64,000 nt of DNA from Anaeramoeba ignava BMAN (Eukaryota; Protista; Anaeramoebae): assembly GCA_028826165.1 (NCBI GenBank), contig JAPDFW010000100.1:62001-126000 (forward strand), given 5' to 3'. A program made the translations under genes and the position numbers. Below the pieces are notes generated by a model. That model had not been told where the DNA came from, searched no databases, and was given only the letters and a program-made list of their open reading frames with translations. This document shows, piece after piece, positions 5,401 through 52,461 of this stretch. The first letter of the stretch is position 1, and every line of letters starts with the position of its first letter.

Positions 5401-5503
5401 TATTAGAAGGAATTACTCTTGAACAAAATGAATTTGATAAAAGAAAAAAAATAAAACAAATTGAAAAAGAAAAAGAAAAAGAAAAAAGATTAAATTTAAT
5501 CAT
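2455..5503 (-). CDS. Type-I membrane protein: signal peptide, LamG/ConA-like domain, Ig/cadherin-like stalk, TM helix, N-terminal part of a RasGAP domain; appears 3'-truncated (possible pseudogene)
   Basis: Exon1 5503-5266 (hydrophobic N-terminus), GT-AG intron 5265-4887 filled with AAAATT, exon2 from 4886 in frame (HTG|IESSTGSQP). LamG-like motifs SFSIEIWF, YHLIVNW, SVYLNN, ERILTSEEIKGNY. TM IAVGASVGGFGLVLIVVLVVLVV-RRKK. RasGAP-like LIKDEVEKTEQEYTLFRLNTPSSK. Coding character ends at ~2548; the rest is T-rich read-through. Confidence 0.75.
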
Positions 5504-6394: not shown

Positions 6395-8368
6395 TCAGAA
6401 AAAAAGAAAAAAAGAAAAAAAGAAAATTGAAATTGAAATTGAAATTGAAAGAGAATTGAAAAGAAAAGAAGGTGAATTAGAAAAAGGTGAATTTGGAATT
6501 GAGATATTAAGTGTTGCAGTTGTTGAATAATAAATTGTTGAATTGATTTCTTCATAAATTGAATAATTAATTGTAATTATTGTTTCTTTACCTCCAAGAA
6601 TATAAATCATTTTAGAATTTTGAGGTAATGTTGAGCCAGTTTTAATAGTAATATATCCTTCTGAATCTGAATAGAAATTTGCACCATTTGCTTCTAAAAT
6701 ATTCTCAATTATTACAGTGAAATTATATTCTTTTAAAATACTTTCACATTCAAGTTCAATTCCTTCAATTTTTCCAGTTTCTAAATTTACTTTTTGATTA
6801 TTAACTTGAAGAAAATTTTGAATTATAATATTTTCATTACAATTTGTTGAATTTTTTCCTCTATCATTTGTAACAAAATATGAAAAATTAATTAATTGTT
6901 GAGATGAATGATTTAAATTTTCTTCATATTCATAAATAACACTCCAATTATCAAAAGATCTATAATCAACAATAGTATCATTTGAAATAATTTTTGAACC
7001 TTTAGTTTGATTTGAAAGAATTTGATAAATTGATCCATTTAAAGGAATTGAATTAATTATTGCATTATTAAGATTTGAATATTGATCATTTCCAATTAAA
7101 GAAATTTGACAAGATTTATCAATATTAATACAATAAGTTGATAAAGAAGAACAATATGGATTTGGAGGATTGATTGAAACATTAAATTGAATTGAATAAG
7201 GAGGATTTGGAAATGTTGAAAAATTATTAGTTTTATCAAAAAGTGAAATATTCCATTTAGTAATATAAGAATCATGTTCAAGATTTCCTTCAAAAAGAAA
7301 TTGAGAAGATAAATTAACATTTAATTCTTGTTCATTATAAATCAAATTTGTTTTTATTCCATCAAAAAATGTGTAAATATATCCATAAAGTGGTTCAAAA
7401 ATATCAATTGTTTTCAATATAAATGTATCATTTGTTTCATTTGTAAAAGATTCAAGACTAATAATATCTATTTATTTTATTTTCCAAAAAATTATTTTTA
7501 ATTCAAATTCAAATTCAAATTCAAATTCAAATTCCAAATAAATAAAAATAAAAAATAAAAAAATACCTTTTAATTGAAAAGTTTTGTTTGTTTGAACATT
7601 TAATGAATTAATTAAAATTGATGGAGGAGCAGGAGGTGGTCCATTATTAAATCTACTTAAAATATATGAAGATGAAAGTTCACTTCCATAAACTCCTAAA
7701 TACATAAATCTTGATCCTACAGAGATATACATTCCTACATTTTGACCTTCAGGAATTGTTAAATAATTATTCCCATCAGAATGAATAATTGAATTAATCA
7801 AAGTTCCATTATAATAAGTTGAAAAATTTCCATTTTTTTTATAAGTAAAAACAATATGATTTAAGAATCCAAATGATGAAATATTGGAATAAAGAGTTTT
7901 ATAGTTTTGATTTTGATCAAAAATAGTAATTTGAATTTGAGGAGGAGATTGAGATGTATCAGTTACTGCATAAAAAAAATAATTTGCAGCCTCCATGTAA
8001 AATAGAGTATAAAATGAATTATTTGCAGGAGGTTGAAGAAACCAATATTCAAAAGAAGCTTGCTCAGTATATGAAGTTGAATTTAATCCACATCCTTGAG
8101 TTAAATCAGAACAATTACAATATATTGGATTAGATTGAATAATATTAATTTGAGTCATATTAACACCAGAACTAAAAAGTGAAGGATAAAGCCAATTTCC
8201 AGAAACACCAGAGAAAAAGAAAGTTTGATCAGGTAAAGAAGCAGCAATATCACCTTTTCCTTCATTAAATTTAAATTCAAATTGTTTATTAACTTGAGAT
8301 AATCTAATTTCAATTAAAAAAATCAAAAAAATAAATTGAAAAAGATTAAATTTAAAATTATTTGCCAT
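6395..8368 (-). CDS. LamG/ConA-fold surface glycoprotein, copy A (624 aa), probable GPI anchor
   Basis: Exon1 8368-7567, GT-AG intron 7566-7468, exon2 7467-6395 in frame (QLKD|IISLES). Signal peptide; FKFNEGKG, ASFEYWF, NHIVFTY, STYYNG motifs; Pro linker GPPPAPP; many N-x-S/T sites; hydrophobic C-terminus with no cytosolic tail. Confidence 0.8.
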
Positions 8369-11300
8369 TTTTGTTTTGTTTTGTTTGTTTGTTTTTGATT
8401 AATTAAAATTTTGTTTTTGTTTTTTGTTTTGGAAAAGAAAAAAAAAATGGATTTTTTAATTTAAAACATTTTTTTTTCTTAAAAACTCATTAATTAATTA
8501 GTCATTTTATTTTAATATTATTTATTATTTAATATTATTTAATTTAATTAAAAATATATAAAAAAATGGTAAATTTAATCAAATCAAGATCAAATCAAGA
8601 TCAAATTTAAAACAAAATTTAAAATTAAAAATAAAAACAAAAAAAAATTCAAACAAAAAAAAATTTTTTTTTTCAATATAAAATTTAATTTTGATCAATA
8701 AATAAATTAAATAAATTAATTAAATAAAAAGAAAAATTAATTATTTTAAATTTAATTTTAAATAAAAAGAAAAAAGGAAATTAAAATTGCTTTTTTTTGG
8801 ATTTTATTTTTTTTTGTTTGGAAATTTAAAATTAAAATTAAAATTAAAATTAAAATTAAAATTAAATATTATTTCTATTATTATTATTATTATTATTTTA
8901 AATTTAATTTATTTTAATTTTCCAAAAAAATCAAAATCAAAATCAAAATAATTTAAATTTAAAAAATTTAAAAATAAAATTAATAAATCTTAATAAAATT
9001 AAATTAAATAAAATGATCTATTTTTTATTTTTTATTTTGATTTTTTTTTTGCCTAATAAATATTTAATTTTAATTTTAAATTTAAATTTTAATTTTGAAA
9101 TGATGAAAATTATCCAAATTTTTATTTTTAAAAAACAAAAAAAAAAAAGAAAATAATTTATTTTAAAAATAAAAAGAAATTAAAATAATAAAAATAATAA
9201 ATTAAATTTAAATTATTTATTTAAATAATTAAATTAAATAAAATATTTATAAATAATTAATCAAAAATTAATCCAAAAAAAAAAGAAGAAAAAAAAGAAA
9301 AAGAAAAAAAATTTATTTTTATTTTTAATTAAAATTAATTAATAAATAAATAAAAACTAAATTAAAAATATCTTATAATAATAAAATATTTAATAATAAA
9401 ATAATAAATTAAAATTAATTATTTATTTAATTAATAATCAAAATAATTATTAATTATTTATTTTTAATTTAATTATTAAAAAATTCTCAAAAAAAAAATT
9501 ATTTTTTTTCTTTCTTTCAAAATAAGAATAAAAATAAAAATAAAAATAAAAATAAAAATAATCTTTTTAATAATTATTTTGATTAATTTAATAATTATTT
9601 AAAATTAAATTATTATTCCAAAATTTATATTTATTTCTTTTTAATAATTTGGAAAATTAATTTTATTTTTTTTTTATTTTTTGGATTTCAAATTTTTAAA
9701 TAAAAATAAAAATAAATTTAAATTTAATCAAATAAAAATAAATATTTATTTTTGTTCCACTTTTTGATTATTTTATTTTTATATTAAAAATTAAATAAAA
9801 ATTTGATAAATTAAATAATAAATATTTATTTTATTCTTATTAAATTTAAATTTAAATAAAGAAAGAAAGAAAGAAAGAAATAAGATAATTAAAATATTAA
9901 ATAAATTTATTATTTGATTTTTATTATTTATTATTTATTATTTATTATTTTAATATTGTTTTTTTTTGTAATTAAGATTTATAAATTTATTTTTTATTTT
10001 TTTTTTGATAAATTTAAAAATAATTTTATTTTCTTTTTCTTTAATTTTTAATTTAAATTTTTAATTTTAAATTTAAATTTCTTTTTATTTATATTATTTT
10101 TGATAAGTTTTAATTATTTTATTTAAATAAATTTTATTTTTATTTTTATTTTTATTTTCATTATTAAATATCAATTTTTATTTTTATTTTTTAAATCAAA
10201 AAAAAATCAAAAATAAATAAATAAATAAATAAAAAGGGGAATTAGGGAAAATTAAATAAATAAATAAATAAATAAAGGAAAATGAAATAATTCTCTTAAT
10301 TATTTTATTTAAATTTAATTATTTTAATTAAATTAATTATTTTTAAAATTTTTTAAAATTTTTTTTGTTATTTTTATTTTGGAATAAAGATTTTTCTTTT
10401 TTATTTTATAAACAAAAATAAATAAAAAATAAAAAATAAGAATAAAAAAAGAATAAATTGGAATTTTTTATTATTAATGTTTTTTAAAATTAAAATTTAT
10501 AAATAAAATAAAATTTCTTAAATTAAAATTTTTGTTTTTTTTGTTTTTTTTGTTTTTTTTGAAAATAAATTTAAATAAAATAAAAAAGAATTTTAAAAAA
10601 AAAAACAAAATTAATTAATTAATTTAAATTTAAATTTAAATTTATTCTTATTTTTTTGTTTTTGTTTTTGTTTTTGTTGTTTATTTTTTTTGTAAAAATA
10701 AATTTTAAAATTTTTGATTAAATTTTTGATTTGGATTTTTTTTAATCTTTAATTAATTAAATAAATAAATTAAAATAAAATTTAATTTAAAATAATTTAA
10801 TTTTTGAAAATAAAATAAATTATTAATTATTATATAAATTAAATCTTTAATTAATTAATTTATTTTTATTCCAAATTTTTATTTTTATTTTTGGAATGAA
10901 AAATAAAAAAATAAAAATAAATTAATCAAAAATAAATTAAATTAAATTAAATTAATAAATATTAAATAAATAAATTAATTTAAAATAAATATTTAATAAA
11001 TATTTTAAATTTTAAATTTAATTTTTATTATTTTAATTTTTGATTAAATTTATATTAAAATTAATTAAATTATTTTATTAATTATTTAATAAGGAAAATA
11101 AATAATTAAATTATATTTTATATTATTAATTTATTTCAAAATAATTTATACATTAAAGTTAATAATTATATTATTATTTAAAATTATTTTATTTTGTTTT
11201 AGAAATTAAATTAATTAAAATTCAAATTAATATTTTTGATTCCAAATTTATATTTGATTTTAAATCAATTTTAAATTAATTTAGATAATAAAATCTTTTT

Positions 11301-11459
11301 ATAAATTTTATAAATAAATAATTTTATATTTTAAATAATATTTTCTTTTTATTTTTATTATTTTTATTTTTGGAATTTATATTTAATTTTTTTCATTTTT
11401 TTTAATTTAGAAAATAAAAAGTGGAATAAAAAGTGGAATAAAAATGAAATAAAAATATT

Positions 11460-12065
11460 TTTAAATTATTTCTTAATTAAATTTATTACAAAATAATAAA
11501 TAAATTATAATTAAAAATCAAATAAAATAATAAATAAAATATTTTAATTAATTTATTTAATTATTTTTAATAATAATAATTTAATATTAATAATAAATTC
11601 ATTTTTAAAATTATTTCTTAATTAAATTTATTACAAAATAATAAATAAATTATAATTAAAATTAAATAAAATAATAAATAAAATATTTTAATTAATTTAT
11701 TTAATTATTTTTAATAATAATAATTTAATATTAATAATAAATTCATTTTTAAAATTATTTTTAATTAAATTTATTACAAAATAATAAATAAATTATAATT
11801 AAAAATTAAATAAAATAATAAATAAAATATTTTAATTAATTTATTTAATTAATATTAATAATAATAATTTAATATTAATAATAAATTCATTTTTAAAATT
11901 ATTTTTAATTAAATTTATTATAAAATAATAAATAAATTATAATTAAAAATTAAATAAAATAATAAATAAAATATTTTAATTAATTTATTTAATTATTTTT
12001 AATAATAATAATTTAATATTAATAATAAATTCATTTTTAAAATTATTTCTTAATTAAATTTATTA
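11460..12065. repeat. Tandem repeat, ~144-bp unit, about 4 copies
   Basis: TAATTAAATTTATTA(C/T)AAAATAATAAATAAATTATAATT and AAATTCATTTTTAAAATTATTT recur at ~143-146 bp spacing. Confidence 0.8.
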
Positions 12066-12209
12066 ATTTATTTTTAATAATTAAATTAAGAAATAAAAAG
12101 GATTTTTTGTTGATTAAAATAATTTTTGTTTTTTTTTTGTTTTTAAGAAATAAATAAATAAATAAATAAATAAAGAAAGAAAATTAATTTTATTTTCAAT
12201 TTTTCCAAT

Positions 12210-13174
12210 GGTCGTTTTTGCGAAAAGATGCTATCTTTCTAAATTTGAGAGTTATTGATAATATATGAAATAATTTCCTTTGTTATCGATTATTTTTCTG
12301 ATAAAAACAAAGAAGAGATTTTTTGACTAAAAATGAAATAACCAAATTCAAAATTTTTTATTGTTTTTTTCATTCTTTATTAAAATTTTCTTTTTCTTTT
12401 TCTTCATATTTTGAATCGATTTTGTCAATTTTAATCAATAATTTCTTTTCTCATCTAATCTCTCAATTCAATTCAATTTCTCTTCTTTATTCTTTCTCTT
12501 CTTTGACAAATAATTTTGGATTTTTTATTCTAACAAATGAATTAAAAGAATAGAATAATCTTTTCATTAGATTTTGAAAATAAATTGTCTCTTCAGATTA
12601 TTCTTTCTTCATTGTATGAAAGGATCTTTGTTTTTAATTTCATTACAATGACAAAATATTTCAAAAAGTTATCAACAATTCTTTATTGATTTCTTTTAGA
12701 TGTCAATTACATACAATGGAAATTTTCTTGTTCATTTTTTATTTGAGTATTTTAGACATCTTCTCCCATTTGGGTTATAAAATCAATACCTTTTTCATCA
12801 ATAAAATATAATTTGAAACTTTTTGCATAGAATGATTTTATAACCCAAATGGGAGAACATATAAATTTTAATAGTTTTGAAAAAGAACTCCTTATATCTC
12901 AACTATAAATTAATTTGATTCAAATTTAAAAACAAAAAACAAATATAAAACTTATTGAGAATAAAATGGTTATTTCAAAATTGCAAGAAGTTATTCAAAT
13001 AAAAGAAAAAAAAAGCAAAATAAATTTGAGAAGTTTTATTTTTGTTATCAATATTATAAACTTTCTCGACCCCTTTCTTCTCAACAATAAACAAAAGAAA
13101 TGGCTTGAAAAGATGTGTTATTAAAGAAAATGATTTTTGGCCAATTTTTCGATCATCTATTCGCAAAAACGACC
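12210..13174. mobile_element. Non-autonomous DNA transposon (MITE-like), 965 bp, 21-bp TIRs, 3-bp AAT target-site duplication
   Basis: Left TIR GGTCGTTTTTGCGAAAAGATG (12210-12230); right TIR CATCTATTCGCAAAAACGACC (13154-13174), one mismatch. AAT immediately flanks both ends. The interior is richer in GC than the flanks and has no intact ORF. Confidence 0.85.
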
Positions 13175-16100
13175 AATTTCTTTTTTATTTTTATTTTATT
13201 TATTATTTTATTTAGAATTAAATTGTGAAAAATAAAGAAAAGAAGAAAGAAAATTAATTTTTTTTTTCTTTTTGGGAATATTTTTTGTTTTGTTATTTTA
13301 AATTAAGAAGAAGAAAGAAAAAAAGAATTAAAATTAAAAATTGTTTTTGTTTTTATTTTTGTTTTTGTTTTTGTTTTAATTTAATAAATAATTTCAAATT
13401 TAATTTATTATTTTTATTTTTTTTGGGAAATAAAAAAAATGATTTAATTTTATTTAATTATTTCTAAAATTAATTAATTAAATAATTAATATTTCTCTTT
13501 TTTATTTTTATTTTTATTTTTATTTTTATTTTTATTTTTAAATTTGGAAAATAAATTTAAATTGATTTATGTTTATTTTCTTTTTGTTTTATTTTTGATT
13601 TTTTGATTTTTTGATTTTTTGGAAATTAAAAAATTTTGAATAAGTAAATAAATAATTAAATAATTTATTCTTCTTTCTTTCTTTCTTTCTTTTTTCTAAA
13701 ATATTCTTTCAATCAAAATAATAATAATAATTTAAATTAATTTGAATAAATTAATAAATATAATTTAATTTATGTAAAAAAAAAACAAAAGAGAAATTAT
13801 TATTTTTATTTTTATTTTTGAAATTATTTAAAAAAAATATTTAGAGAATAAGATAAATTAAGAGAAAATTTATAAAATGAAATAATTTATAAATAAAATA
13901 TTATTTAAATTTAATTTAAAATTTATTTATAATTTAATTAAATAAAATGAAAGAAATTATTCTTAATTTTTCTTTTTCAATAATAAGTAAGAAATAATAA
14001 ATAATAAAAACTTATAAATTAGAACTTTTTGTTTTTTTATTTATTTCTTTCTTTGATTATTTATCAAAACAAAAATATAATTTTTTCTCTCAATTCAAAT
14101 CTTTTAAAAAAAAAAGAAAATTTTTTTTGTATATTTAAAATTTATATTCTTAATTTTTGAATATAAAAATTAAGAATATAAATTTGAAAATTATTTATAT
14201 TCTTTATATAAAATAAAATTTATTTAATTAATAATTCATTCTTATTCTTAAAATTATTATTTTATATTTAAAAACAATTTTAACAAATTTTTCTTTTTAT
14301 AAGTTAAATTTTATTTATTCTTTTTCTAATTTTTTTTCTTTTCAATTTCTTGAATTAAAATTTATTTTAATTTATTTTATTTTATCATAAATTAATTAAT
14401 AATTTTAATTATTTTTTTTTCAATTTAATCTTATTTTATTTTATATTTGAAAATTATTATTTCTGATTATTAAATTATTTATATTATTTTAATTAAATTC
14501 AAAATCTTCTTCTTCTTCTTCTTTTCTTTTTTCATAATTTGAATTATTTCAATTTTTTTCTTCAATTAAATTTTAATTATTTTCTTTTAAATAATTTTTT
14601 TTTCTAAATTAATTAGAAACAAAACAAAACAAAACAAATTTATTTATATTTATATTTATATTTATATTTATATTTTTATTAAGAAAGATAATTAAAAATA
14701 AATAAAAGAAATAAGAAGATACAAAAATATGAAATATAATCACAATATTTAATGTAAAATATTATCTTAGAAAATAAATAATATTTAATTTGAAAAATAA
14801 AATAAACAATAAATAAGTTTTGATATGAAATTTACAAGAAATCTAAAAATATCTTTGATTATTCCAAATAAAAATTAATAATAATTCTCTCTAAAAAGAA
14901 ATTAAATTATTTTCAAAAAGAATTTAAGAAAGATTTATAGATAAAAATAATTATTAAAAATATTTATTAATTAATAATTAAATAAAAATAATTTATAAAA
15001 TATAAGAAAAATCAAAATCAAAATCAAAAAGAATTTTATTTATTTTTATTGTAAATATAATAATAAATAAGAAATTGAAATAATAAAATAAAATATAAAT
15101 TATATTCAAATAAATAAATAGAGAAGAATTCTTTAATTTTATTTGTAAATTTTTATTATAATAAACATAAAAATTAATAAAATAAAATAAAATAACAAGA
15201 AAATATTATTAGAAAAAGTAAAAATTGATTTCAAAATAATATTTTTGAAATTATATTATTATTTATTATTTAAATATTAAGAGAATAAAATTCTTGAAAA
15301 TGAAGAAAATTAAATAATTATAGAAAGAAAATCAAGTTAATAATATAAATAATTAGAAGAAACAAAATAATCATAAATAATAAAATTAAAATTAATTCCA
15401 AAATAATCAATTAGAAACAAAATAATAAATAAATTTAAATTATAAAAATTAAATAAAAATAAAATCAAAAAAACTTAATAATATTAGAAAATAAAAATAA
15501 AGAATATAAATAATTAATTCAAAAAGAAAATAAGAAAAAAAAAGAAAATTTTTTAATATAAATCAATTTTATAATTAAAATTAAATTCAAAATTATTGAA
15601 AAAGGAGAATTTAAATATAAGATAAATTAAATTCTTTTTTTTCTTTTTTTGAAATTCTTATAGAGAAGAAAATTATTATTAATAATAAAATAAGAATTAA
15701 TAATTTAAGAGATATAAATTTCTTAATTTTATTTTTGTTTTTATTTTAAACAAATATAAATATAAATAAAAATAATTTTAAATAATATTTTTCAAATAAA
15801 TTAAAATCAAAAATTTAAATTTTAATTATTTTTCTTTGATTTAAATTTGATAAAATAAACATTAATTTATTTAAAAATGAAAAAAAAAGAATTTAATTTT
15901 CTTTCTTTCTTCTTCTTCTTTTTCTTTTCAAAATTATCAAAATAAGGGAAATATAATTAAGAAGAAAAATATCAAGAATAAATTTATTTAAGAAATTAAA
16001 TTAATTTAAATTAAATAAAATATAATAAAATTAATTATTTTAGAAAAGATATATTAATATCAAGAATAAGTTTATTTTTATTTTTAATTAATTTTAATAT

Positions 16101-17940
16101 AAATAATTTAAATTTTGATAATTTAAAAATGAATAAAAATAAAGAATATTTTTTTTCAAAAGAAGAATATATATTTTTATTTTATTTTCTTATTTTCCTT
16201 ATAAAAATCAAATAAATGAATAATAAATTTTCTCTTAAAAAAAAAGATAAAAAAAATCAAAAATTAACACAATAAAATCTTCTTTTTCAAATTTCAAAAT
16301 TTCAAAATTTCAAAATTTCAAAATAATTAATAAATTGAAATAATAATAAATTTTTCAAACAAAAACAAAAAAAACAAAAAATAAATATGTATTCTCTTTA
16401 ATTTCATAAAAATATAAAATTATTCAAAAATATTCTTTTATTCAATAAATAAATGAAAATAAATTTAAAATATAAAATTTATTTATTTATTTATTTAAAT
16501 TATATTTGAAAATATTTAATTAAAAGAAAAAGAAAATATTATTATAAAAATATAAATTAAAAATCCAAAAATTCAAAATTCAAAATTAAATTCAAATATA
16601 AATTAAAAAGAAGAAAATATTTCTAAAATAATTTGGAAAATTTAAATAAATAATTTGAAAGAAAAGAAAAGAAAAGAAAAGAAATTAATAAGAATAATTA
16701 AATAAATCAAGAGAAAAAGAAATGAAAATAAAAATATTTTTACTTTCCAATTTAATTTAATTTAATTTAATTTAATTTAAAAATAAAAAATATTTAAAAA
16801 TAATAAATAAGATAAATATGAATAAATAAGATAAATATTGATAAATTATTTCTAAAAATCAAAAATTTTTGTAAAAATATTTTTATTTTATTCAAAAAGA
16901 AAAAAAAATTTATTAATTAATTAAATAAATAATATAAAGTGATATCAATTAATGAATATATTTTATAAATATTTATTTATATTTATTAAATAATTTATTA
17001 ATTAAATAATAATATAATTTTTGTTTTTAATTTTTTTTAAATTTTTGAAAATAAATTAAATATTTTATATTTATTAATAAATAAAATAAAATAAATCAAT
17101 AATAATTAAATAATATAAAAAGTGATATCAATTAATGAATATATTTTATAAATATTTATTTATATTTATTAAATAATTTATTAATTAAATAATAATATAA
17201 TTTTGTTTTCATTTTTAAATTTTTGAAAATAAAATTAAATATTTTATATTTATTAATAAATAAAATAAAATAAATCAATAATAATAATAATAATAATATA
17301 AAAATGATATCAATTAATAAATATATTTTATAAATATTTATTTATATTTATTAAATAATTTATTAATTAAATAAATAATAATATAATTTTGTTTTTAATT
17401 TTTTTTTAAATTTTTGAAAATAAATTAAATATTTTATATTTTATTAATAAATTAAATAAAATAAATCAATAATAAATAAATAAATAATATAAAATGATAT
17501 CAATTAATGAATATATTTTATAAATATTTATTTATATTTATTAAATAATTTATTAATTTATTTTACATTTAAAATTTAAAAAAAAAGAATAAGAATGAAA
17601 ATATTAATAAATCTAAAAATATTGAAAATGAGAATAAAAATAAACTATTATAAACAAAGAATTAAATTCAAAATAAGAAATAAAAGTGATAAATTTCAAA
17701 ATTTGAAATGATAAATAATTTTTTTTTGATTAATTTATTCTTAATATTCCTTAAAGAAGATATTTACAATCAAATAAAAATAAATTTAATAAAAAAAAAC
17801 CAAAAATAAAAATAAAAATAAAAATAAAAATAAAAATAAAAATAAAAGAAGATTTGATTTTGTTTTGTTTTTTTTGATTTAAAATAATTTTATTTAATAA
17901 AAAAAAAGAAAAAAAAATAATTAGAATTGTTTTATATTCC

Positions 17941-18515
17941 AAATCAAAATTAAATCAAAATTAAATCAAATTAAATCAAAATCAAAATCAAAATCAAAAT
18001 TAAATTAAATCAAAATTAAATTAAATCAAATTAAAATTAAATTAAATCAAATTAAATCAAAATCAAATTAAAATTAAATCAAAATTAAAATTAAATTAAA
18101 ATTAAAATTAAATCAAAATCAAAATTAAATTAAAATCAAATCAAAATTAAATTAAATTAAATTAGATTAAATTAGATTAAAATTAAATTAAATTAAATAA
18201 GATTAAATTAAAATTTAATTAAATTAAATTAAATAAAATTAAATTAGATTAAATTAGATTAAATTAAATTAAAATTAAATTAAATTAAATTAAATTAAAT
18301 TAAATAAAATTAAATTAAATTAAATTAAATTAAATTAAATTAGATTAAATTAAATTAAATTAGATTAAATTAAATTAAATTAAATAAAATTAAAATTAAA
18401 TTAAATTAAATTAAATTAAATTAAATTAAATTAGATTAAATTAATATTAGATTAAATTAGATTAAACTAAATTAAATTAAAATTAAATTAAATTAAAATT
18501 AAATTAAATTAGATC
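17941..18515. repeat. Hybrid AAATC/AAATT/AGATT microsatellite
   Basis: Starts like the 1255-1915 tract and ends like the 5950-6095 tract (…AAATTAGATCTGATC). Confidence 0.9.
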
Positions 18516-18730
18516 TGATCTTTTTTCTTTTTTTTTCTTTTTTTTATTTTGATTGTTTGAATTATTTTTATTTATTTTTTTTGGATTTAAAATTAAAAAT
18601 TAAAAATTAAAAAGAAATTAAAAAGATTTTTTGATTTTGTTTTTGTTTTTATTTTTATTTTTTATTTTTGAAATTCATTCATTTGAAAAAAAGAAAAAGA
18701 AAAAGAAAAGAAAATATTTTCCTTTTTTCT

Positions 18731-18763
<33 letters not shown>

Positions 18764-18789
18764 ATTGATTGATTAATTGATTGATTGGT

Positions 18790-20759
18790 TCAGAAAAAAA
18801 GAAAAAAAGAAAAAAAGAAAATTGAAATTGAAATTGAAAGAGAATTGAAAAGAAAAGAAGGTGAATTAGAAAAAGGTGAATTTGGAATTGAAATATTAAG
18901 TGTTGCAGTTGTTGAATAATAAATTGTTGAATTGATTTCTTCATAAATTGAATAATTAATTGTAATTATTGTTTCTTTACCTCCAAGAATATAAATCATT
19001 TTAGAATTTTGAGGTAATGTTGAGCCAATTCCAATAGTATTATATCCTTCTGAATCTGAATAGAAATTTGCACCATTTGCTTCTAAAATATTCTCAATTA
19101 TTACAGTGAAATTATATTCTTTTAAAATACTTTCACATTCAAGTTCAATTCCTTCAATTTTTCCAGTTTTTAAATTTACTTTTTGATTATTAACTTGAAG
19201 AAAATTTTGAATTATAATATTTTCATTACAATTTGTTGAATTTTTTCCTCTATTATTTGTAACAAAATATGAAAAATTAATTAATTGTTGAGATGAATGA
19301 TTTAAATTTTCTTCATATTCATAAATAACACTCCAATTATTTAAAGATCTATAATCAACAATAGTATTATTTGAAATAATTTTTGAACCTTTAGTTTGAT
19401 TTGAAAGAATTTGATAAATTGATCCATTTAAAGGAATTGAATTAATTATTGCATTATCAAGATTTGAATATTGATCATTTCCAATTAAAGAAATTTGACA
19501 AGATTTATCAATATTAATACAATAAGTTGATAAAGAAGAACAATATGGATTTGGAGGATTTATTGAAACATTAAATTGAATTGAATAAGGAGGATTTGGA
19601 AATGTTGAAAAATTATTAGTTTCATCAAAAAGTGAAATATTCCATTTAGTAATATAAGAATCAAGTTCAAGATTTCCTTCAAAAAGAAATTGAGAAGATA
19701 AATTAACAATTAATTCTTGTTCAATATAAATCAAACTTCCTTTTATTCCATCAAAAAATGTGTAAATATATCCATAGACTTGGTCAAAAATATCAATTGT
19801 TTTCAATATAAATGTATCATTTGTTTCATTTGTAAAAGATTCAAGACTAATAATATCTATTTATTTTATTTTCCAAAAATTTATTTTTAATTCAAATTCA
19901 AATTCAAATTCAAATCCCAAAAATAAAAATAAAAATAAAAATAAAATAAAAAAATACCTTTTAATTGAAAAGTTTTGTTTGTTTGAACATTTAATGAATT
20001 AATTAAAATTGATGGAGGAGCAGGAGGTGGTCCATTATTAAATCTACTTAAAATATATGAAGATGAAAGTTCACTTCCATAAACTCCTAAATACATAAAT
20101 CTTGATGATACATAAACAGGAGTTGCTCCAGCTTTACCTTGAGTCATTGTTAAATAATTATTCCCATCAGAATGAATAATTGAATTAATCAAAGTTCCAT
20201 TATAATAAGTTGAAAAATTTCCATTTTTTTTATAAGTAAAAACAATATGATTTAAGAATCCAAATGATGAAATATTCAAATAAAACACTTTTGAGTTTTG
20301 ATTTTGATCAAAAATCCAAATTTGAATTTGAGGAGGAGATTGAGATGTATCAGTTCCTGCTACAAAAAACCAATCTCCTGCAAGAATTTGAAATAGATCA
20401 TATAATGAATTATTTTCAGGAGGTTGAAGAAACCAAAATTCCAAAGAAGCTTGCTCAGTATATGAAGTTGAATTTAATCCACATCCTTGAGTTAAATCAG
20501 AACAATTACAATATATGAAATTGCTTGCAATACCATTACTTTGACTCAAATTAACACCAGAACTAAAAAGTGAAGGATAAAGCCAATTTCCAGAAACACC
20601 AGAGAAAAAGAAAGTTTGATCAGGTAAAGAAGCAGCAATATCACCTTCTCCTTCATTAAATTTAAATTCAAATTGTTTATTAACTTGAGATAATCTAATT
20701 TCAATTAAAAAAATCAAAAAAATAAATTGAAAAAGACTAAATTTAAAATTATTTGCCAT
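18790..20759 (-). CDS. LamG/ConA-fold surface glycoprotein, copy B (622 aa), probable GPI anchor
   Basis: Exon1 20759-19958, intron 19957-19857, exon2 19856-18790. Paralog of copy A with the same intron position. Confidence 0.8.
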
Positions 20760-23700
20760 TTGTTTGTTTTTTTGATTAATTAAAATTGTTTTTGTTTTTA
20801 TTTTGGAAAAGAAAAAAAAAATGGATTTTTTAATTTAAAACATTTTTTTTTCTTAAAAACTCATTAATTAATTAGTCATTTTATTTTAATTTAATTTTAA
20901 TTTTATTATTTAATATTATTTAATTTAATTAAAAATATATAAAAAAATGGTAAATTTAATCAAATCAAGATCAAATCAAGATCAAATTTAAAAACAAAAT
21001 TAAAATTAAAACTAAAACAAAAAAACAAAAATTCAAACAAAAATTTTTCAATATAAAATTTAATTTTGATCAATAAATAAATTAAATAAATTAATTAAAT
21101 AAAAAGAAAAATTTATTATTTTAAATTTAATTTTAAATAAAAAGAAAAGGAAATTAAAATTGCTTTTTTTTTTGGATTTTATTTTTTTTTGTTTTTGAAA
21201 TTTAAAATTAAAATTAAAATTAAAATTAAAATTAAAATTAAAATTAAAATTAAAATTAAAATTAAAATTAAAATTAAAATTAAAATTAAAATTAAAATTA
21301 AAATTAAAATTAAAATTAAAATTAAAATTAAAATTAAAATTAAAATTAAAAATAAAATTAAAATTAAAATTAAAATTAAAATTAAAATTAAAAATTAAAA
21401 TTAAAATTAAAATTAAAATTAAAATTAAAATTAAAATTAAAATTAAAATTAAAAATTAAAATTAAAATTAAAATTAAAATTAAAATAAAAATTAAAATTA
21501 AAATTAAATATTATTTCTATTTTTATTATTATTATTTTAAATTTAATTTATTTTAATTCTTCAAAAAATCAAAATCAAAATCAAAATAATTTAAATTTAA
21601 AAATTAAAAATAAAATTAATAAATCTTAATAAAATTAAATTAAATAAAATGATCTATTTTTTATTTTTTATTTTGATTTTTGCCTAATAAATATTTAATT
21701 TAATTTAAATTTATTTTTAATTTTGAAATGATGAAAAATTATCCAAATTTTTATTTTTAAAAACAAAAAGAAAATAATTTATTTTAAAAATAAAAAGAAA
21801 TTAAAATAATAAAAATAATAAATTAAATTTAAATTATTTATTTAAATAATTAAATTAAATAAAATATTTATAAATAATTAATCAAAAATCAAAATCCAAA
21901 AAGAATTTTATTTATTTTTATGTAAATATAATAATAATAAATAAGAAATTTAAATAATAAAATAAAATATAAATTATATTCAAATAAATAAATAAAGAAG
22001 AATTCTTTTAATTTTATTTATAAATTTTTATTATAATAAACATTAAAAAAATTAATAAAATAAAATAAAATAACAAGAAAATATTATTAGAAAAAAAAGT
22101 AAAATTGATTTCAAAATAATATTTTTGAAATTATATTATTATTTATTATTTAAATATTAAGAGAATAAAATTCTTGAAAATGAAGAAAATTAAATAATTA
22201 TAGAAAGAAAATCAAGTTAATAATATAAATAATTAGAAGAAACAAAATAATCATAAATAATAAAATTAAAATTAATTCCAAAATAATCAATTAGAAACAA
22301 AATAATAAATAAATAAATTTAAATTATAAAAATTAAATAAAATAAAATCAAAAACTTAATAATATTAGAAAATAAAAATAAAGAATATAAATAATTAATT
22401 CAAAAGAAAAAGAAAATAAGAAAAATTTTTAATATAAATCAATTTTATAATTAAAATTAAATTCAAAATTATTGAAAAAAAAAAGGAGAATTTAAATATA
22501 AGATAAATTAAATTCTTTTTTTCTTTTTTTGAAATTTATAATTTAGAAAATTATTAATAATAATAAAATAAGAATTAATAATTTAAGAGATATAAATTTC
22601 TTAATTTTATTTTTGTTTTTATTTTAAACAAATACAAATAAAAATAAAAACAATTTTAAATAATATTTTTTCAAATAAATTAAAATCAAAAAATTAAATT
22701 AAATTTTTCTTTTGATTTAAATTTGATAAAATAAACATTAATTTATTTAAAAATGAAAAAAAAAAGAATTTAATTTTCTTTCTTTCTTCTTTTTCTTCTT
22801 TTCAAAATTATCAAAATAAGGAAATATAATTAATAAGAAAAATATCAAGAATAAATTTATTTAAGAAATTAATTTAAATTAAATTAAATTAAATAAAATA
22901 TAATAAAATTAATTATTTTAGAAAAGATATATTAATATCAAGAATAAGTTTATTTTTTAATTAATTTTAATATAAATAATTTAAATTTTGATAATTTAAA
23001 AATGAATAAAAATAAAGAATATTTTTCAAAAAGAAGAATAAATAATATTTTTATTTTATTTTCTTATTTTCCTTATAAAAAAAAATCAAATAAATGAATA
23101 ATAAATTTTCTCCTTAAAAAAAAGATAAAAAAATCAAAAATTAACACAATAAAATCTTCTTTTTCAAAATTCAAATAATTAATAAATTGAAATAATTAAT
23201 AAATTTTTCAAATAAAAAACAAAAAAACAAAAATAAATATGTATTCTCTTTAATTTCATAAAAATATAAAATTATTCAAAAAAAAAATATTCTTTTATTC
23301 AATAAATAAATGAAAATAAATTTAAAATATAAAATTTATTTATTTATTTATTTAAATTATATTTGAAATATTTAATTAAAAGAAAAAAGAAAATATTATT
23401 ATAAAAATATGAATTAAAAATCCAAAAAAATCAAAAATTCAAAATTAAATTCAAATATAAATTAAAAAGAAGAAAATATTTCTAAAAAAATTTGGAAAAT
23501 TTAAATAAATAATTTGAAAAAAAGAAAAGAAAAGAAATTAATAAGAATAATTAAATAAATCAAGAGAAAAAAAAGAAATGAAAATAAAAATATTTTTACT
23601 TTCCAATTTAATTTAATTTAATTCAATTTAAAAATAAAAATATTTACAAATAATAAATAAGATAAATATGAATAAATAAGATAAATATTGATAAATTATT

Positions 23701-24770
23701 TCTAAAAATCAAAATTTTTTTTTGTAAAAATATTTTTATTTTATTCAAAAAGAAAAAAAAATTTATTAATTAATTAAATCAATAATATAAAGTGATATCA
23801 ATTAATAAATATATTTTATAAATATTTATTTATATTTATTAAATAATTTATTAATTAAATAATAATATAATTTTGTTTTCATTTTTTTAAATTTTTGAAA
23901 ATAAATTAAATATTTTATATTTATTAATAAATAAAATAAAATAAATCAATAATAAATAAATAAATAATATAAAAGTGATATCAATTAATTAATATATTTT
24001 ATAAATATTTATTTTATATTTATTAAATAATTTATTAATTAAATAATAATATAATTTTGTTTTAATTTTTTTAAATTTTGAAAATAAATTAAATATTTTA
24101 TTTTTATTAATAAATAAAATAAATAAAATAAATAATATAAAATGATATCAATTAATGAATATATTTTATAAATATTTATTTATATTTATTAAATAATTTA
24201 TTAATTAAATAATAATATAATTTTGTTTTAATTTTTTTAAATTTTTGAAAATAAATTAAATATTTTATAATTATTAATAAATAAAAATAAAATAAATCAA
24301 TAATAAATAAATAATAATATAAAATGATATCAATTAATGAATATATTTTATAAATATTTATTTATATTTATTAAATAATTTATTAATTTATTTTACATTT
24401 AAAATTGAAAAAAAAAGAATAAGAATGAAAATATTAATAAATTTAAAAATATTGAAAATAAGAATAAAAATAAACTATTATAAACAAAGAATTAAATTAA
24501 AAATAAAAAATAAAAGTGATAAATTTCAAAATTTGAAATGATAAATAATTTTTTTTTGATTAATTTATTCTTAATATTCCTTAAAGAAGATATTTACAAT
24601 CAAATAAAAATAAATTTAATAAAAAAAAACCAAAAATAAAAATAAAAATAAAAATAAAAATAAAAATAAAAATAAAAGAAGATTTGATTTTGTTTTGTTT
24701 TTTTTGATTCAAAATAATTTTATTTAATAAAAAAAAAGAAAAAAAAATAATTAGAATTGTTTTATATTCC

Positions 24771-25760
24771 AAATCAAAATCAAAATCAAAATTAAAATTA
24801 AATTAAATCAAAATCAAAATCAAAATCAAAATTAAATTAAATCAAAATTAAATTAAATCAAATTAAAATTAAATTAAATCAAATTAAATCAAAATTAAAT
24901 CAAATTAAATCAAATTAAATTAAATTAAAATTAAAATTAAATCAAAATCAAAATTAAATTAAAATCAAATCAAAATTAAATTAAATTAAATTAGATTAAA
25001 TTAGATTAAATTAAATTAAATAAGATTAAATTAAATTTAATTAAATTAAATTAAATAAAATTAAATTAAATTAAATTAGATTAAATTAGATTAAATTAAA
25101 TTAAATTAGATTAAATTAAATTAAATTAAATAAAAATTAAAAATTAAATTAGATTAAATTAAATTAAATTAGATTAAATTAAATTAAATTAAATTAAAAT
25201 CAAAAATTAAATTAAATCAAATTAAATTAAATTAAATCAAAAATTAAATCAAATTAAATTGAATTAAATTAAATTAAATCAAATTAAATTAAATCAAATT
25301 AAATTAAATTAAATCAAAATTAAATCAAAATCAAAATTAAATTAAATCAAATTAAATCAAAATTAAATCAAATTAAATCAAATTAAATTAAATTAAATTA
25401 GATTAAATTAGATTAAATCAAATTAAAATCAAAATCAAAATTAAAATTAAAATTAAAAAAATTAAATCAAAATTAAATCAAAATTAAATCAAAATTAAAT
25501 AAATTAAATTAAATTAAATTAAATTAAATTAAATTAAATTAAATTAAATTAAATTAAATTAGATTAAATTAAATTAAATTAAATAAAATTAAAATTCAAA
25601 TTAAATTAAAGATTAAATTAAATTAAAATTAAATCAAAATTAAATTAAATTAAAAAATTAAATTAAATTAAATTAAAATTAAATTAAATTAAATCAAATT
25701 AAATTAGATTAAACTAAATTAAATTAAAATTAAATTAAAATTAAATTAAATTAGATCTGA
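24771..25760. repeat. Hybrid AAATC/AAATT/AGATT microsatellite (longer allele)
   Basis: Same start and end as 17941-18515 but about 1 kb long. Confidence 0.9.
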
Positions 25761-26062
25761 TCTTTTTTCTTTTTTTTCTTTTTTTATTTTGATTGTTTGA
25801 ATTATTTTTATTTATTTTTTTTGGATTTAAAATTAAATTAAAAATTAAAAATTAAAAAGAAATTAAAAAGATTTTTTGATTTTGTTTTTATTTTTATTTT
25901 TATTTTTTATTTTTGAAATTCATTCAATTGAAAAAAAGAAAAAGAAAAAGAAAAGAAAATATTTTCCTTTTTTCTTTTTGATTGATTAATTGATTAATTG
26001 ATTGATTGATTGCTTGCTTGATTGATTGATTGATTAATTGATTAATTGATTGATTGATTGAT

Positions 26063-28036
26063 TCAGAAAAAAAGAAAAAAAGAAAAAAAGAAAATTGAAA
26101 TTGAAATTGAAAGAGAATTGAAAAGAAAAGAAGGTGAATTAGAAAAAGGTGAATTTGGAATTGAGATATTAAGTGTTGCAGTTGTTGAATAATAAATTGT
26201 TGAATTGATTTCTTCATAAATTGAATAATTAATTGTAATTATTGTTTCTTTACCTCCAAGAATATAAATCATTTTAGAATTTTGAGGTAATGTTGAGCCA
26301 GTTTTAATAGTATTATATCCTTCTGAATCTGAATAGAAATTTGCACCATTTGCTTCTAAAATATTCTCAATTATTACAGTGAAATTATATTCTTTTAAAA
26401 TACTTTCACATTCAAGTTCAATTCCTTCAATTTTTCCAGTTTTTAAATTTACTTTTTGATTATTAACTTGAAGAAAATTTTGAATTATAATATTTTCATT
26501 ACAATTTGTTGAATTTTTTCCTCTATTATTTGTAACAAAATATGAAAAATTAATTAATTGTTGAGATGAATGATTTAAATTTTCTTCATATTCATAAATA
26601 ACACTCCAATTATTTAAAGATCTATAATCAACAATAGTATCATTTGAAATAATTTTTGAACCTTTAGTTTGATTTGAAAGAATTTGATAAATTGATCCAT
26701 TTAAAGGAATTGAATTAATTATTGCATTATCAAGATTTGAATATTGATCATTTCCAATTAAAGAAATTTGACAAGATTTATCAATATTAATACAATAAGT
26801 TGATAAAGAAGAACAATATGGATTTGGAGGATTTATTGAAACATTAAATTGAATTGAATAAGGAGGATTTGGAAATGTTGAAAAATTATTAGTTTCATCA
26901 AAAAGTGAAATATTCCATTTAGTAATATAAGAATCAAGTTCCACATTTCCTTCAAAAAGAAATTGAGAAGATAAATTAACAATTAATTCTTGTTCAATAT
27001 AAATCAAACTTCCTTTTATTCCATCAAAAAATGTGTAAATATATCCATAGACTTGGTCAAAAATATCAATTGTTTTCAATATAAATGTATCATTTGTTTC
27101 ATTTGTAAAAGATTCAAGACTGATAATATCTATTTATTTTATTTTCCAAAAAAATTTATTTTTAATTTAAATTCAAATTCAAATTCCAAAAAATAAAAAT
27201 AAAAATAAAAATAAAAATAAAAATAAAAAAATACCTTTTAATTGAAAAGTTTTGTTTGTTTGAATATTTAATGAATTAATTAAAATTGATGGAGGAGCAG
27301 GAGGTGGTCCATTATTAAATCTACTTAAAATATATGAAGATGAAAGTTCACTTCCATAAACTCCTAAATACATAAATTTTGACCATACAGAGATATACAT
27401 TCCTGAATCACCTTCAGGAATTGTTAAATAATTATTCCCATCAGAATGAATAATTGAATTAATCAAAGTTCCATTATAATAAGTTGAAAAATTTCCATTT
27501 TTTTTATAAGTAAAAACAATATGATTTAAGAATCCAAATGATGAAATATTGGAATAAAGAACTTTTGAGTTTTGATTTGGATCAAAAATCCAAATTTGAA
27601 TTTGAGGAGGAGATTTAGATGTATCAGTTTCTGCTATCAAAAAGTAACCATTATGTGATTTCATTTCAAATAGAATACTACCGAAGTTATTTGGAAGAGG
27701 TTGAAGAAACCAAAATTCCAAAGAAGCTTGCTCAGTATATGAAGTTGAATTTAATCCACATCCTTGAGTTAAATCAGAACAATTACAATATATTGGATTG
27801 CTTGCAATACCATTACTTTGACTCAAATTAACACCAGAACTAAAAAGTGAAGGATAAAGCCAATTTCCAGAAACACCAGAGAAAAAGAAAGTTTGATCAG
27901 GTAAAGAAGCAGCAATATCACCTTCTCCTTCATTAAATTTAAATTCAAATTGTTTATTAACTTGAGATAATCTAATTTCAATTAAAAAAATCAAAAAAAT
28001 AAATTGAAAAAGATTAAATTTAAAATTATTTGCCAT
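26063..28036 (-). CDS. LamG/ConA-fold surface glycoprotein, copy C (622 aa), probable GPI anchor
   Basis: Exon1 28036-27235, intron 27234-27130, exon2 27129-26063. Paralog of copies A and B. Confidence 0.8.
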
Positions 28037-50691: not shown

Positions 50692-50965
50692 ACAAAAAAA
50701 AATAATTCATTTTCTCTTTTTTTTTTTAAAACATTTCAATTTCATTTTAATTCATTTTAATTCATTTTTCATTTCATTTTCTTCAAATCATTTTTTTTTC
50801 TTTCTAAAAAAAAGCAAAAGAACAAAATACAAATTAATTTCAATTTCAATTTCAATTTCAATTTCAATTTCAATTTTATTTTTTTTATTTTGACATTGAA
50901 AAACAATTTTTATTTTTATTCCACTTTTTTTTTTTATTCCATTTTTTTATTTTTATTTCACAAAA

Positions 50966-52461
50966 ATGTTTCAAAAAAATATTAATTTTTTTCAAAAACA
51001 AAAAATTCCAAAATCAAATTTAAAAGATTTTCAATTAAATTCTTGGTTTTCTTTCTTTTCTTTAAATTCAAATTCAAATTCAAATTCAAATTCAAATTCA
51101 AATTCTTCCTTTTTCCCTTTAAAAATTTCAATTTCAAAAATTCAAAATATTCCTTTTTTTTTATTTAAAGATTTAAAAATGAAAAGGAAAATTTCAATTT
51201 TTTCCTTTTCATTTCTCTTTTTGATCAATCAAATAGATCTTTTTTTGGTTCAACTTGGAAAAAACAAATTTTAATTTCAAAAGAAAAAGAAAAAGAAAAA
51301 GAAAAAGAAAAAGAAAATTCAATTTCAATTTTGATTAAAGAATCAATTTTTGGATTCCTTTCTGAAAATGAAAATTTAGTTATAGTTTTAGAATTTGCTT
51401 TACAGAAAAATTTCAATAAAATTCAAAAAGAAATTTATGGAATTGGATGGTCAATTATCAAACCATTTAGTGAAGAAAATTTATCAATTTGGAATAAAAT
51501 AATTAGTATTCCACTTTTTAATGGAACTCCAAGATCACTTTTAATTCTTCAAAATCCAACAAAATTAATTAAAGATTGTTATATTCATCTTTATTTACAA
51601 AAAACAGAAATGATCAAAGAAATTCTTCATTTAGTTCCAATCAATTTCTTCTTTTCTAAATCAGATAATATTCCTGGAATTAGTAAATCACTTGGGAATC
51701 ATTTCAAATTGAATCCATTAATTAATTTGTCATTTAAAATTCAATTATTTTTCCAAAAAAATTTTGAATTGGAACTTTTGGATTGTTTGATCAATTCCAT
51801 TTTTCTCAATTTTTATCAAGAATTTAATCAAGAAATTTCAAACAAAATCAAAAAATCAATTAAAATAGAACAAAGGAAATTATCAATAGAAGTTCATAAC
51901 GGATTAAAAAGCATAAGGAAATTGGGAGAATTCTTTCTTGATTTGGAAAAAAAAGATGAAAAAATAATTTTAAATTTACCAGGTCCAATTCATGTTATTA
52001 ATCAAATTCGAAAAAATCCTTTTTTTGTTTTAAAATTAGAGTTGATTTACTTGATTGATTTTGGTAATTTTTCTTCAATTCAAAAACATTTGGAAAAGAA
52101 ATCTTGTGAACTTTTTTGTAATTTGATTAATCAAGAAAAAGTGGAATTTCCTTTTTTCATTTCAATTTCAAAAGGAATATTTTTTCCTTTTACAACAAAA
52201 GGAGTTTTAAGAAAAGAAGAAATGATAATTCCTATGTTAACAAATGAACAAATCAAAATGAGAATCCAAACTAATCTAATCAAAAAAGAGAAACAATTTC
52301 CAAAAACCATTTTCCCAATTAAACTTGAAAATTCAGAAGGAAATTTAAATAAAAATTTAGAAGAAAATTTAGAAGAAAATTTAGAAAGAATTCAAAAATA
52401 CAGAGAAGAAATTAAAGAATTGGAAATTAGAAGAAAATTTGAAAATCATTTTTGGAAATGA
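50966..52461 (+). CDS. NPHP4: Nephrocystin-4-like protein, N-terminal C2 region only; one frameshift near 51175 (error or pseudogene)
   Basis: ISLFDQSNRSFFGSTW, LVIVLEF, GIGWSII, LFNGTPRSLL and IEQRKLSIEVHNG resemble NPHP4 motifs recalled from memory (SLFD…FFGRTW, LYHGTPRALL, ERRLRVGVHNG). One extra A in the 51175-51179 run joins the two ORFs. Confidence 0.7.

Follow-up and report, generated by a model that had tools for sequence, protein, structure and literature searches.

A tandem array of putative lectin-fold surface-protein genes with four hypervariable blocks in a near-invariant scaffold in Anaeramoeba ignava

We analyzed a 64,000-nucleotide stretch of the Anaeramoeba ignava BMAN genome (the window; C101:62001-126000, where C101 is the 237,904-bp contig JAPDFW010000100.1, whose proteins carry NCBI locus tags M0811_11326-11335) and found that it contains three genes, A, B, and C, of a tandem family encoding predicted surface proteins with a LamG-like fold at the N terminus. 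The copies are almost identical to one another except in four short blocks, V1 to V4, which differ densely between genes and whose relationships among the copies are mosaic. We assign a probability of roughly 0.6 to the reading that the array is a germline repertoire of lectin-fold surface proteins, in which selection would keep the binding face diverse while purifying selection and exchange between copies would keep the scaffold uniform.

Variation is concentrated in four blocks of an otherwise near-invariant gene

Genes A, B, and C lie on the minus strand and share one layout, with an exon 1 of 802 nucleotides (nt), a phase-1 GT..AG intron of 99 to 105 nt, and an exon 2 of 1064 to 1070 nt, giving products of 622 to 624 amino acids (aa). 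In gene A, the phase-1 splice restores the reading frame, and the product is identical to a member of an NCBI protein cluster. The genes and blocks are located as follows (window positions; variable columns counted over the six complete copies on C101, as are the other column counts below).

Gene A, 6395..8368 (-): M0811_11333, protein P0010, 624 aa; exon 1 7567-8368, intron 7468-7566, exon 2 6395-7467 including the stop codon
Gene B, 18790..20759 (-): 622 aa; exon 1 19958-20759, intron 19857-19957, exon 2 18790-19856
Gene C, 26063..28036 (-): 622 aa; exon 1 27235-28036, intron 27130-27234, exon 2 26063-27129
V1 (-): A 8123..8161 (aa 70-82), B 20514-20552, C 27791-27829; 17/39 columns variable
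V2 (-): A 7949..8053 (aa 106-140), B 20340-20444, C 27614-27721 with one extra codon; 51/108 columns variable
V3 (-): A 7883..7927 (aa 148-162), B 20274-20318, C 27548-27592; 15/45 columns variable
V4 (-): A 7709..7756 (aa 205-220), B 20100-20147, C 27377-27421 with one codon fewer; 29/48 columns variable

Against these block counts, only 5 of 565 nt vary in the exon-1 scaffold. The inter-block segments, which are 21 to 126 nt long, contain 0 or 1 variable column each (0/69 nt between V1 and V2 and 0/126 nt between V3 and V4), and variation is sparse in exon 2 (45/1089 columns) and somewhat denser in the intron (19/110). The copies differ on average at 25% of block positions and at more than 50% in the block cores. 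At the protein level, 56 of the 80 block codons vary, with a mean of 2.84 residues per site among the six copies, and half of the block codon pairs that encode different amino acids differ at two or three nucleotides. Indels in the blocks comprise whole codons only. Interspersed with the variable codons are invariant ones that are the same in all copies, including L122 (CTA), T136 (ACT), T138 (ACA), K157, Y160, and a DQNQN island, and these retain a single codon even at 4-fold sites and where that codon is rare. A weaker variable stretch occupies the start of exon 2, at approximately aa 290 to 335. Frameshifting with compensation was rejected as a source of the block differences, since the nucleotide alignments contain no offset gaps and the indels are confined to whole codons.

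The array comprises six complete genes and a seventh copy

An earlier note on this DNA, made from the letters of the window alone, had described A, B, and C as a tandem array with four variable blocks in a near-invariant framework. The peptides, coordinates, and identical stretches that it quoted are all present, the column counts bear out the blocks, and the array is larger than the three copies it reported. When all six frames of the 42.8-Mb assembly were searched, six complete two-exon genes and a seventh copy were found on C101 and, outside the array, a single distant paralog on another contig, C74 (34 to 41% identity). Three of the complete copies, g1, g2, and g3, lie upstream of the window, with exon 1 at C101:20426, 36936, and 54085. 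Exon 2 of g2 (C101:35792-36849) carries a one-base frameshift as assembled, which the NCBI annotation spans with an artificial intron (605-aa model P0003); g2 is either a real pseudogene or affected by an assembly error. The seventh copy (C101:2433-5000) lies 2.4 kb from the contig end and contains many homopolymer-type indels, but its V2 was recovered without indels in a short-read contig at single-copy depth. The gene itself is therefore probably intact and the contig end poorly polished, and the array may continue past that end.

The tandem units are approximately 16.5 kb each, except for the final two, which are shorter (12.4 and 7.3 kb). Spacers can be aligned over kilobases between units, with about 2% substitutions and many indels, and a region of approximately 480 bp upstream of the gene has been kept alike in all copies. 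Within the window, the spacers at 8400-18700 and 20800-26000 have a G+C content of 5 to 10% over many kilobases, are about 98% conserved between units in aligned bases, and contain no open reading frame (ORF) of at least 80 aa.

We considered whether the copies could be mis-assembled haplotypes or chimeras of the long-read consensus, given the homopolymer indels throughout the seventh copy and the frameshift in g2. The copies occupy separate units of about 7 to 17 kb with their own spacers, and the NCBI annotation likewise lists six separate genes. Contigs from public short-read runs are at single-copy depth for every block variant but 6 to 7 times deeper for the shared scaffold; these runs probably derive from the same culture as the assembly and are therefore not fully independent evidence. 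An assembly artifact is effectively excluded, and we give it the smallest chance of all the explanations discussed here. The published genome of A. ignava was assembled from Nanopore and Illumina reads, with 80.65% A+T and a ploidy given as unknown, and the paper does not mention the array family (PMC11550330). We found no paper or annotation that describes the family, whose members NCBI labels only as hypothetical proteins, in keeping with the suggestion of the earlier note that it was possibly undescribed.

Three of the variable blocks map to strands and loops of a predicted jelly-roll domain

Sequence searches placed the proteins in no known family. hmmscan found no Pfam family at an E value of ≤1 for exon 1 of A, B, and C, exon 2 had no Pfam hit either, and a family profile produced only chance matches to PDB sequences, with no solved structure among them. 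Homologue searches (a representative library with exon 1, a word-index search with exon 2, and the family profile) returned the array itself and the C74 paralog, which also occurs in a transcriptome-derived set and is the only relative detected in 1.84 billion representative proteins. No relative was detected in Anaeramoeba flamelloides, a species whose coverage in these databases was not verified. One match to a repeat protein was dismissed as spurious.

The AlphaFold2 model of the N-terminal domain had a predicted TM-score (pTM) of 0.70 and a core predicted local distance difference test (pLDDT) score of 78 to 92. VIA-align matched it at Z 13 to 14 (root-mean-square deviation of about 3 Å, 155 to 175 aligned residues) and returned 113 chains at Z≥8, Foldseek assigned the fold a probability of 1.0, and the structural neighbors in the ESM Atlas belonged to PF13385. 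The matched structures were CBM40 sialidase lectin modules, pentraxins, neurexin LNS domains, and the lectin-like subdomain of clostridial toxin binding domains, the last of which reflect a shared fold only. These comparisons support membership of the modeled domain in the ConA/LamG/pentraxin-type jelly-roll fold, by structure and without a family-profile match, in agreement with the fold proposed in the earlier note. As in these modules, which are extracellular binding modules, the jelly-roll is recognizable at Z 10 to 14 over 150 to 175 residues; the array proteins differ from them in having no sequence-level Pfam or PDB match and only 9 to 20% identity in the structural alignments. Neurexins diversify the rim of this fold by alternative splicing, whereas diversity in the array comes from paralogs. 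Farther along the protein, aa 370 to 595 are modeled as beta-sandwiches, for which Ig- and cadherin-like neighbors are a lead only.

In the model, V2 consists of a loop and the beta-hairpin formed by aa 119-127 and 129-137, V3 of the two strands that follow (144-151 and 156-162) on either side of the invariant DQNQN turn, and V4 of a loop and the strand 213-217; V1 falls in a poorly modeled N-terminal part. Radical changes occur within the strands at positions 124/126/128, 133/135, 148, 156/158, and 214/216/218, and conservative hydrophobic or small residues occupy the alternating positions 125, 127, 131-132, 134, 215, and 217. Such an alternation is the pattern that a single exposed sheet face would give.

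The proteins begin with a hydrophobic N terminus (a signal peptide by inspection, modeled as a helix at 3-23) and end in ...PNSPFSNSPSFLFNSLSISISIFFFSFFLFF, a hydrophobic segment preceded by small residues, without cytoplasmic residues, and modeled as a helix at 604-623. The sequence has 25 N-glycosylation sequons (NxS/T) and 8 cysteines. The genome encodes components of the glycosylphosphatidylinositol (GPI) transamidase (Gpi16/PIG-T, 227.8 bits; Gaa1, 218.2 bits; Peptidase_C13, 80.5 bits). Because a signal peptide and a hydrophobic tail lacking cytoplasmic residues coincide with transamidase genes in the genome, the GPI anchor that the earlier note considered probable is plausible, and a surface protein that is glycosylated and GPI-anchored and whose lectin-fold head sits on a stalk would be a reasonable reading.

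Block relationships among the paralogs are mosaic

A Sawyer-type permutation test over 173 polymorphic sites was significant (p=0.0005), and the distance matrices of the blocks are incongruent. V1 groups the copies as (g1,g2), (g3,A), and (B,C), V2 brings g2, g3, and B together, and V4 separates A, C, and g1 from g2, g3, and B. Gene C thus has its V1 in common with B and its V4 in common with A, and in the seventh copy V1 resembles that of A and V4 that of g2. Outside the blocks, no two copies are closer than B and C, but in V2 these two differ at 29 of 108 positions. The block relationships are therefore mosaic, of the gene-conversion type. A genome-wide DNA search for a donor of the unique V2 of gene C matched array members only, and no 12-mer donors of novel block sequences were found in the 126 kb around the array.

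Substitution rates rise at individual codons rather than across a region

By Nei-Gojobori (NG86) counting, pN/pS was 0.268/0.169 in the blocks, 0.004/0.003 in the exon-1 scaffold, and 0.022/0.018 in exon 2. Maximum-likelihood (ML) trees under GY94+F3X4 had lengths of 2.98, 0.033, and 0.21 substitutions per codon, respectively. Counting gives a block dN/dS of 1.7 (V4, 3.0; V2, 2.1), and the ratio is about 5 to 10 if the synonymous sites of invariant codons are taken as an internal control; pS at amino-acid-invariant codons inside the blocks is 0.029, which is close to the divergence of the spacers (about 0.02) and to pS in exon 2 (0.011). For single blocks, the ML estimate of omega (dN/dS) was 5.3 for V1 (p=0.11) and 2.5 for V4 (p=0.09), neither of which is significant.

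Several observations weigh against the repertoire reading. The dataset consists of seven sequences from one strain, and the protein clusters of the six genes contain no transcriptome-derived members, which bears on their expression. The block-average omega under the ML model M0 is 0.86 and does not differ from 1 (p=0.58). Block dN/dS thus lies above 1 by counting and below 1 by ML and is not significantly above 1, and a ratio of 1 or below, which the note held to speak against its interpretation, was neither established nor clearly excluded. A partition model with a common neutral clock, in which the blocks differ only in omega (4 to 5.6), was rejected; the preferred partition model gives the blocks a 14- to 26-fold overall rate at an omega of about 0.7 (likelihood-ratio test, 44 to 58). 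Moreover, kappa is about 1 in the blocks compared with about 2.2 in exon 2, and the rate of variation at third codon positions in the blocks is 70% of that at the first two. A faster block rate implies either that the block lineages are much older than the homogenized remainder of the gene or that mutation input is raised there, and single-step codon models cannot separate these possibilities from recurrent multi-step selection.

The same results could point to patch-targeted mutagenesis of young duplicates, through error-prone repair at recurrent lesions or a diversity generator, with selection acting only as a filter. The model with a rate multiplier outperforms the selection-only model, and with kappa near 1, the six base-pair change types are almost equally frequent in the blocks, unlike in exon 2. 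"Unnecessary" nucleotide differences reach 63% of saturation at variable codons, compared with 1.2% at same-residue codons elsewhere in the gene; no template for the novel block sequences turned up, either genome-wide for V2 of gene C or in the 126 kb around the array; and a neighboring receptor gene, described below, shows a like pattern. However, a regional mutator would not spare L122, T136, T138, K157, Y160, and DQNQN, nor is it readily reconciled with inter-block segments that hardly vary or with the conservative changes at buried-face positions. Neither a reverse transcriptase nor a template repeat nor a motif common to the block flanks was found, and the variation is not limited to one base. 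On balance, we regard targeted mutagenesis as quite unlikely.

A regional process, whether old age or hypermutation, does not fit the data because the heterogeneity in rate is resolved to single codons. Codon-specific, recurrent amino acid replacement is a signature of selection on the protein, and multi-step paths were probably read as synonymous change by the single-step codon models.

A block-average omega near 1 would also be expected if the blocks were unconstrained loops drifting neutrally after a recent duplication. Neutral divergence, however, is about 2% in the spacers and 1 to 2% at synonymous sites of exon 2, far below the divergence of the blocks; the blocks include confidently modeled core strands; and the copies have kept their reading frames, their length (apart from indels of whole codons), their hydrophobic periodicity, and their glycosylation sequons. 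Relaxed constraint is effectively excluded, with only a very slight probability left to it.

A neighboring receptor gene is diversified at corresponding positions

Four array units carry, directly downstream of the GPI-type gene, a gene for a type-I membrane protein (P0011, P0012, and P0013 are among the products). The copy in the window, rA, encodes a signal peptide, a LamG-like ectodomain, beta-rich repeats, a transmembrane helix, and the cytoplasmic start of a RasGAP domain.

rA, 2455..5503 (-): M0811_11332, P0013, annotated "neurofibromin"; exon 1 ends within 5234-5503, large exon at about 2455-4946
Other receptor copies: C101:14749-18148, C101:31081-34491, and C101:~48600-52000

A full RasGAP domain is in frame only in the copy r3 (98.5 bits, C101:48610-49263). 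The other three, rA, r1, and r2, diverge into AT-rich sequence immediately after the TLFR(L)N arginine-finger motif (window ~1841-2455 for rA) and are either truncated, decoy-like receptors or represented by incomplete NCBI models, which are 889 aa long and run into the AT-rich sequence. The N-terminal domain of the receptor has a sub-threshold match to Laminin_G_3 (PF13385; E value of 0.016, 15.8 bits against a cut-off of 27.6). The receptor copies are 96 to 97% identical, with nearly all differences in short patches of aa 54-207 that are shared in a mosaic fashion; the remaining approximately 680 residues are almost identical between copies. A profile-profile alignment matched the two LamG-like domains over 128 columns (probability of 75%, E value of 2.5e-5), with receptor patches 119-124, 141-154, and 195-207 falling on V2, V3, and the V4 region.

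The gene pair recurs on C74, at C74:213281-216043 (+; equivalent to L018:3281-6043) and C74:219752-222826 (-), with 33 to 41% identity to the array genes. Here the RasGAP domain of the receptor is complete (the receptor is 33% identical to rA, with an E value of 2e-117), and its partner, 3.7 kb away, is the single-copy GPI-LamG paralog P0004, which is the one present in the transcriptome set; one unrelated ADP-ribosylhydrolase-like gene lies between them. As there are about 120 RasGAP loci in 42.8 Mb, this proximity is unlikely to be due to chance. Receptor and GPI-LamG genes thus form an old module, and in the array both members have diversified where their shared fold corresponds. Such a coincidence speaks for a cause rooted in function, namely a binding face, and suggests that the two proteins work together. 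Complex prediction between the LamG domain of gene A and that of rA scored 0.00 with single-sequence folding, which counts neither for nor against binding.

RasGAP domains (PF00616) are massively expanded in the 42.8-Mb genome, with 149 exon-level matches at 123 candidate loci. Several of the matches lie in long open frames and could represent more receptor-type RasGAPs.

A germline repertoire of recognition proteins as the favored interpretation

Under the repertoire interpretation, the array would be a lineage-specific tandem family of secreted, N-glycosylated, and probably GPI-anchored proteins, each with a LamG-fold head, a stalk of beta-sandwiches, and a GPI signal. About 56 codons, in four patches that comprise a hairpin, two neighboring strand pairs, and the adjoining loops, would be kept different by diversifying selection acting on the surface that binds the ligand. 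Purifying selection, together with gene conversion or unequal crossing-over between paralogs, would homogenize the rest of the gene, and the same exchange would reshuffle whole patches between copies. The outcome would be six or seven germline-encoded binding specificities on one scaffold. The GPI protein and the adjacent RasGAP-type receptor may act in one cell-surface recognition pathway, and the ligands would most likely be variable surface structures of bacteria, either prey or surface-connected symbionts, with roles in prey, symbiont, or kin recognition all conceivable. Of this picture, the data show the gene structure, the copy number, where the variation lies, the fold, the mosaicism, the lack of templates, and the conserved gene pair; selection as the cause, the GPI anchor, the binding of ligands, and the connection with the receptor are inferred from them.

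The exposed surface could instead be a target of viruses, predators, toxins, or bacterial adhesins, with the paralogs providing escape in the manner of antigenic variation, perhaps with one expressed at a time. Variant-surface-protein systems, too, are built from tandem, nearly identical genes in which exposed patches are hypervariable and segments are exchanged, and all copies of the array carry the same upstream region. Yet each copy is a complete gene and no silent cassette is present, relatives of the lectin-type fold found in the variable domain bind their ligands on one face, and the adjacent signaling-type receptor is diversified at the same fold positions, for which ligand recognition is a better fit than camouflage. 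Evasion is accordingly an unlikely explanation, although somewhat less so than targeted mutagenesis.

A more far-reaching proposal carries about as little probability as evasion: the GPI LamG protein and the adjacent variable LamG receptor, which in its ancestral form has a cytoplasmic RasGAP domain, might constitute a paired, co-diversifying recognition system new to protists. In such a system, recognizing particular bacteria (prey versus surface-housed Desulfobacter symbionts) or self would lead directly to the inactivation of Ras at the phagocytic cup, and the codon-level hypervariability might be supplied by a dedicated diversification process in addition to ordinary mutation.

Comparison with known variable recognition systems

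Animals, plants, fungi, and social amoebae are well known to have germline-encoded repertoires of variable recognition proteins. To our knowledge, almost nothing has been reported on such repertoires in free-living anaerobic protists. Anaeramoeba houses sulfate-reducing symbionts in pockets connected to its surface and at the same time feeds on other bacteria (PMC11550330), and it must therefore be able to discriminate between bacteria. In Dictyostelium, phagocytic and macropinocytic cups are under the control of RasGAPs (PMC4374526, PMC7416115); if they shape cups similarly here, a variable ectodomain on a RasGAP receptor would tie recognition of a particle to control of its engulfment. The array offers a concrete, testable candidate for such a system, in which a lectin-fold scaffold with patches resembling complementarity-determining regions (CDRs) stands beside a similarly diversified receptor whose ancestral form has a RasGAP domain. 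It is also an unusually clean natural case of hypervariable codons in an invariant scaffold and may be useful for testing how far selection and gene conversion can reach without a dedicated mutator.

The closest parallel in an amoeba is the tgrB1/tgrC1 pair of Dictyostelium, adjacent genes for two extremely variable surface proteins with a demonstrated function in self-recognition, in which recombination among family paralogs generates new variants (PMC13648343). The two systems have in common an amoeboid host, adjacent genes for variable surface proteins, and recombining paralogs. They differ in that the tgr proteins are both transmembrane proteins built from IPT/TIG (Ig-like) domains, with no sequence relationship to the LamG-fold proteins described here, and that their variation is allelic between strains, whereas that of the array lies between tandem paralogs of one genome; a function of the array in self-recognition is speculative.

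In plant clusters of nucleotide-binding leucine-rich-repeat (NLR) genes such as RPP8, diversifying selection is combined with intergenic exchange (10.1101/694240). The array resembles these clusters in its tandem paralogs, its hypervariable candidate ligand-contact residues in a conserved scaffold, its mosaic exchange, and synonymous diversity that is raised only near the selected codons. Fold, organism, and cellular role are different, the contrast within the array is more extreme (0 variable inter-block columns versus more than 50% in block cores), and the within-block dN/dS of the array is not significantly above 1. The vertebrate major histocompatibility complex is a comparable multigene recognition cluster.

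Bacterial diversity-generating retroelements (DGRs) and the silent-cassette systems Borrelia vlsE and Neisseria pilS produce templated short variable regions amid invariant ones in one surface protein. The array shares this interleaving of variable and invariant regions, and the cassette systems also have tandem, near-identical copies. It differs in being made of complete genes in a eukaryotic host, without a template repeat, a reverse transcriptase, or a silent partial cassette, and, in comparison with DGRs, its variation is not restricted to adenines, as all substitution classes occur. A DGR-like mechanism was rejected for want of a template and of base specificity.

The Entamoeba Gal/GalNAc lectin is an amoebozoan surface lectin with transmembrane and GPI-anchored subunits, encoded by small gene families, that binds bacteria and host glycans. 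It resembles the proposed system as an amoeba surface lectin that pairs transmembrane and GPI-anchored parts but is not known to be related to it in sequence or fold or to have either CDR-like patch variation or a RasGAP-type cytoplasmic domain. The array is new in its scaffold, in its host organism, and in being paired with a receptor of the RasGAP type.

Additional observations

Contigs from four public short-read runs that match the array contain no splice joint. One 2022 run, X3, whose library type is unknown and whose study also includes a second organism, yielded a low-depth contig over window 7966-8356 that extends from near the start codon through V1 to a V2 matching the seventh copy. 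If X3 is an RNA library, the seventh copy is expressed.

Directly upstream of gene C, the ORF at window 28725-29402 (-) encodes 225 aa that consist almost entirely of Q/N-rich repeats (MNYQQ, NQNQ) and represents either a low-complexity protein or a non-coding repeat.

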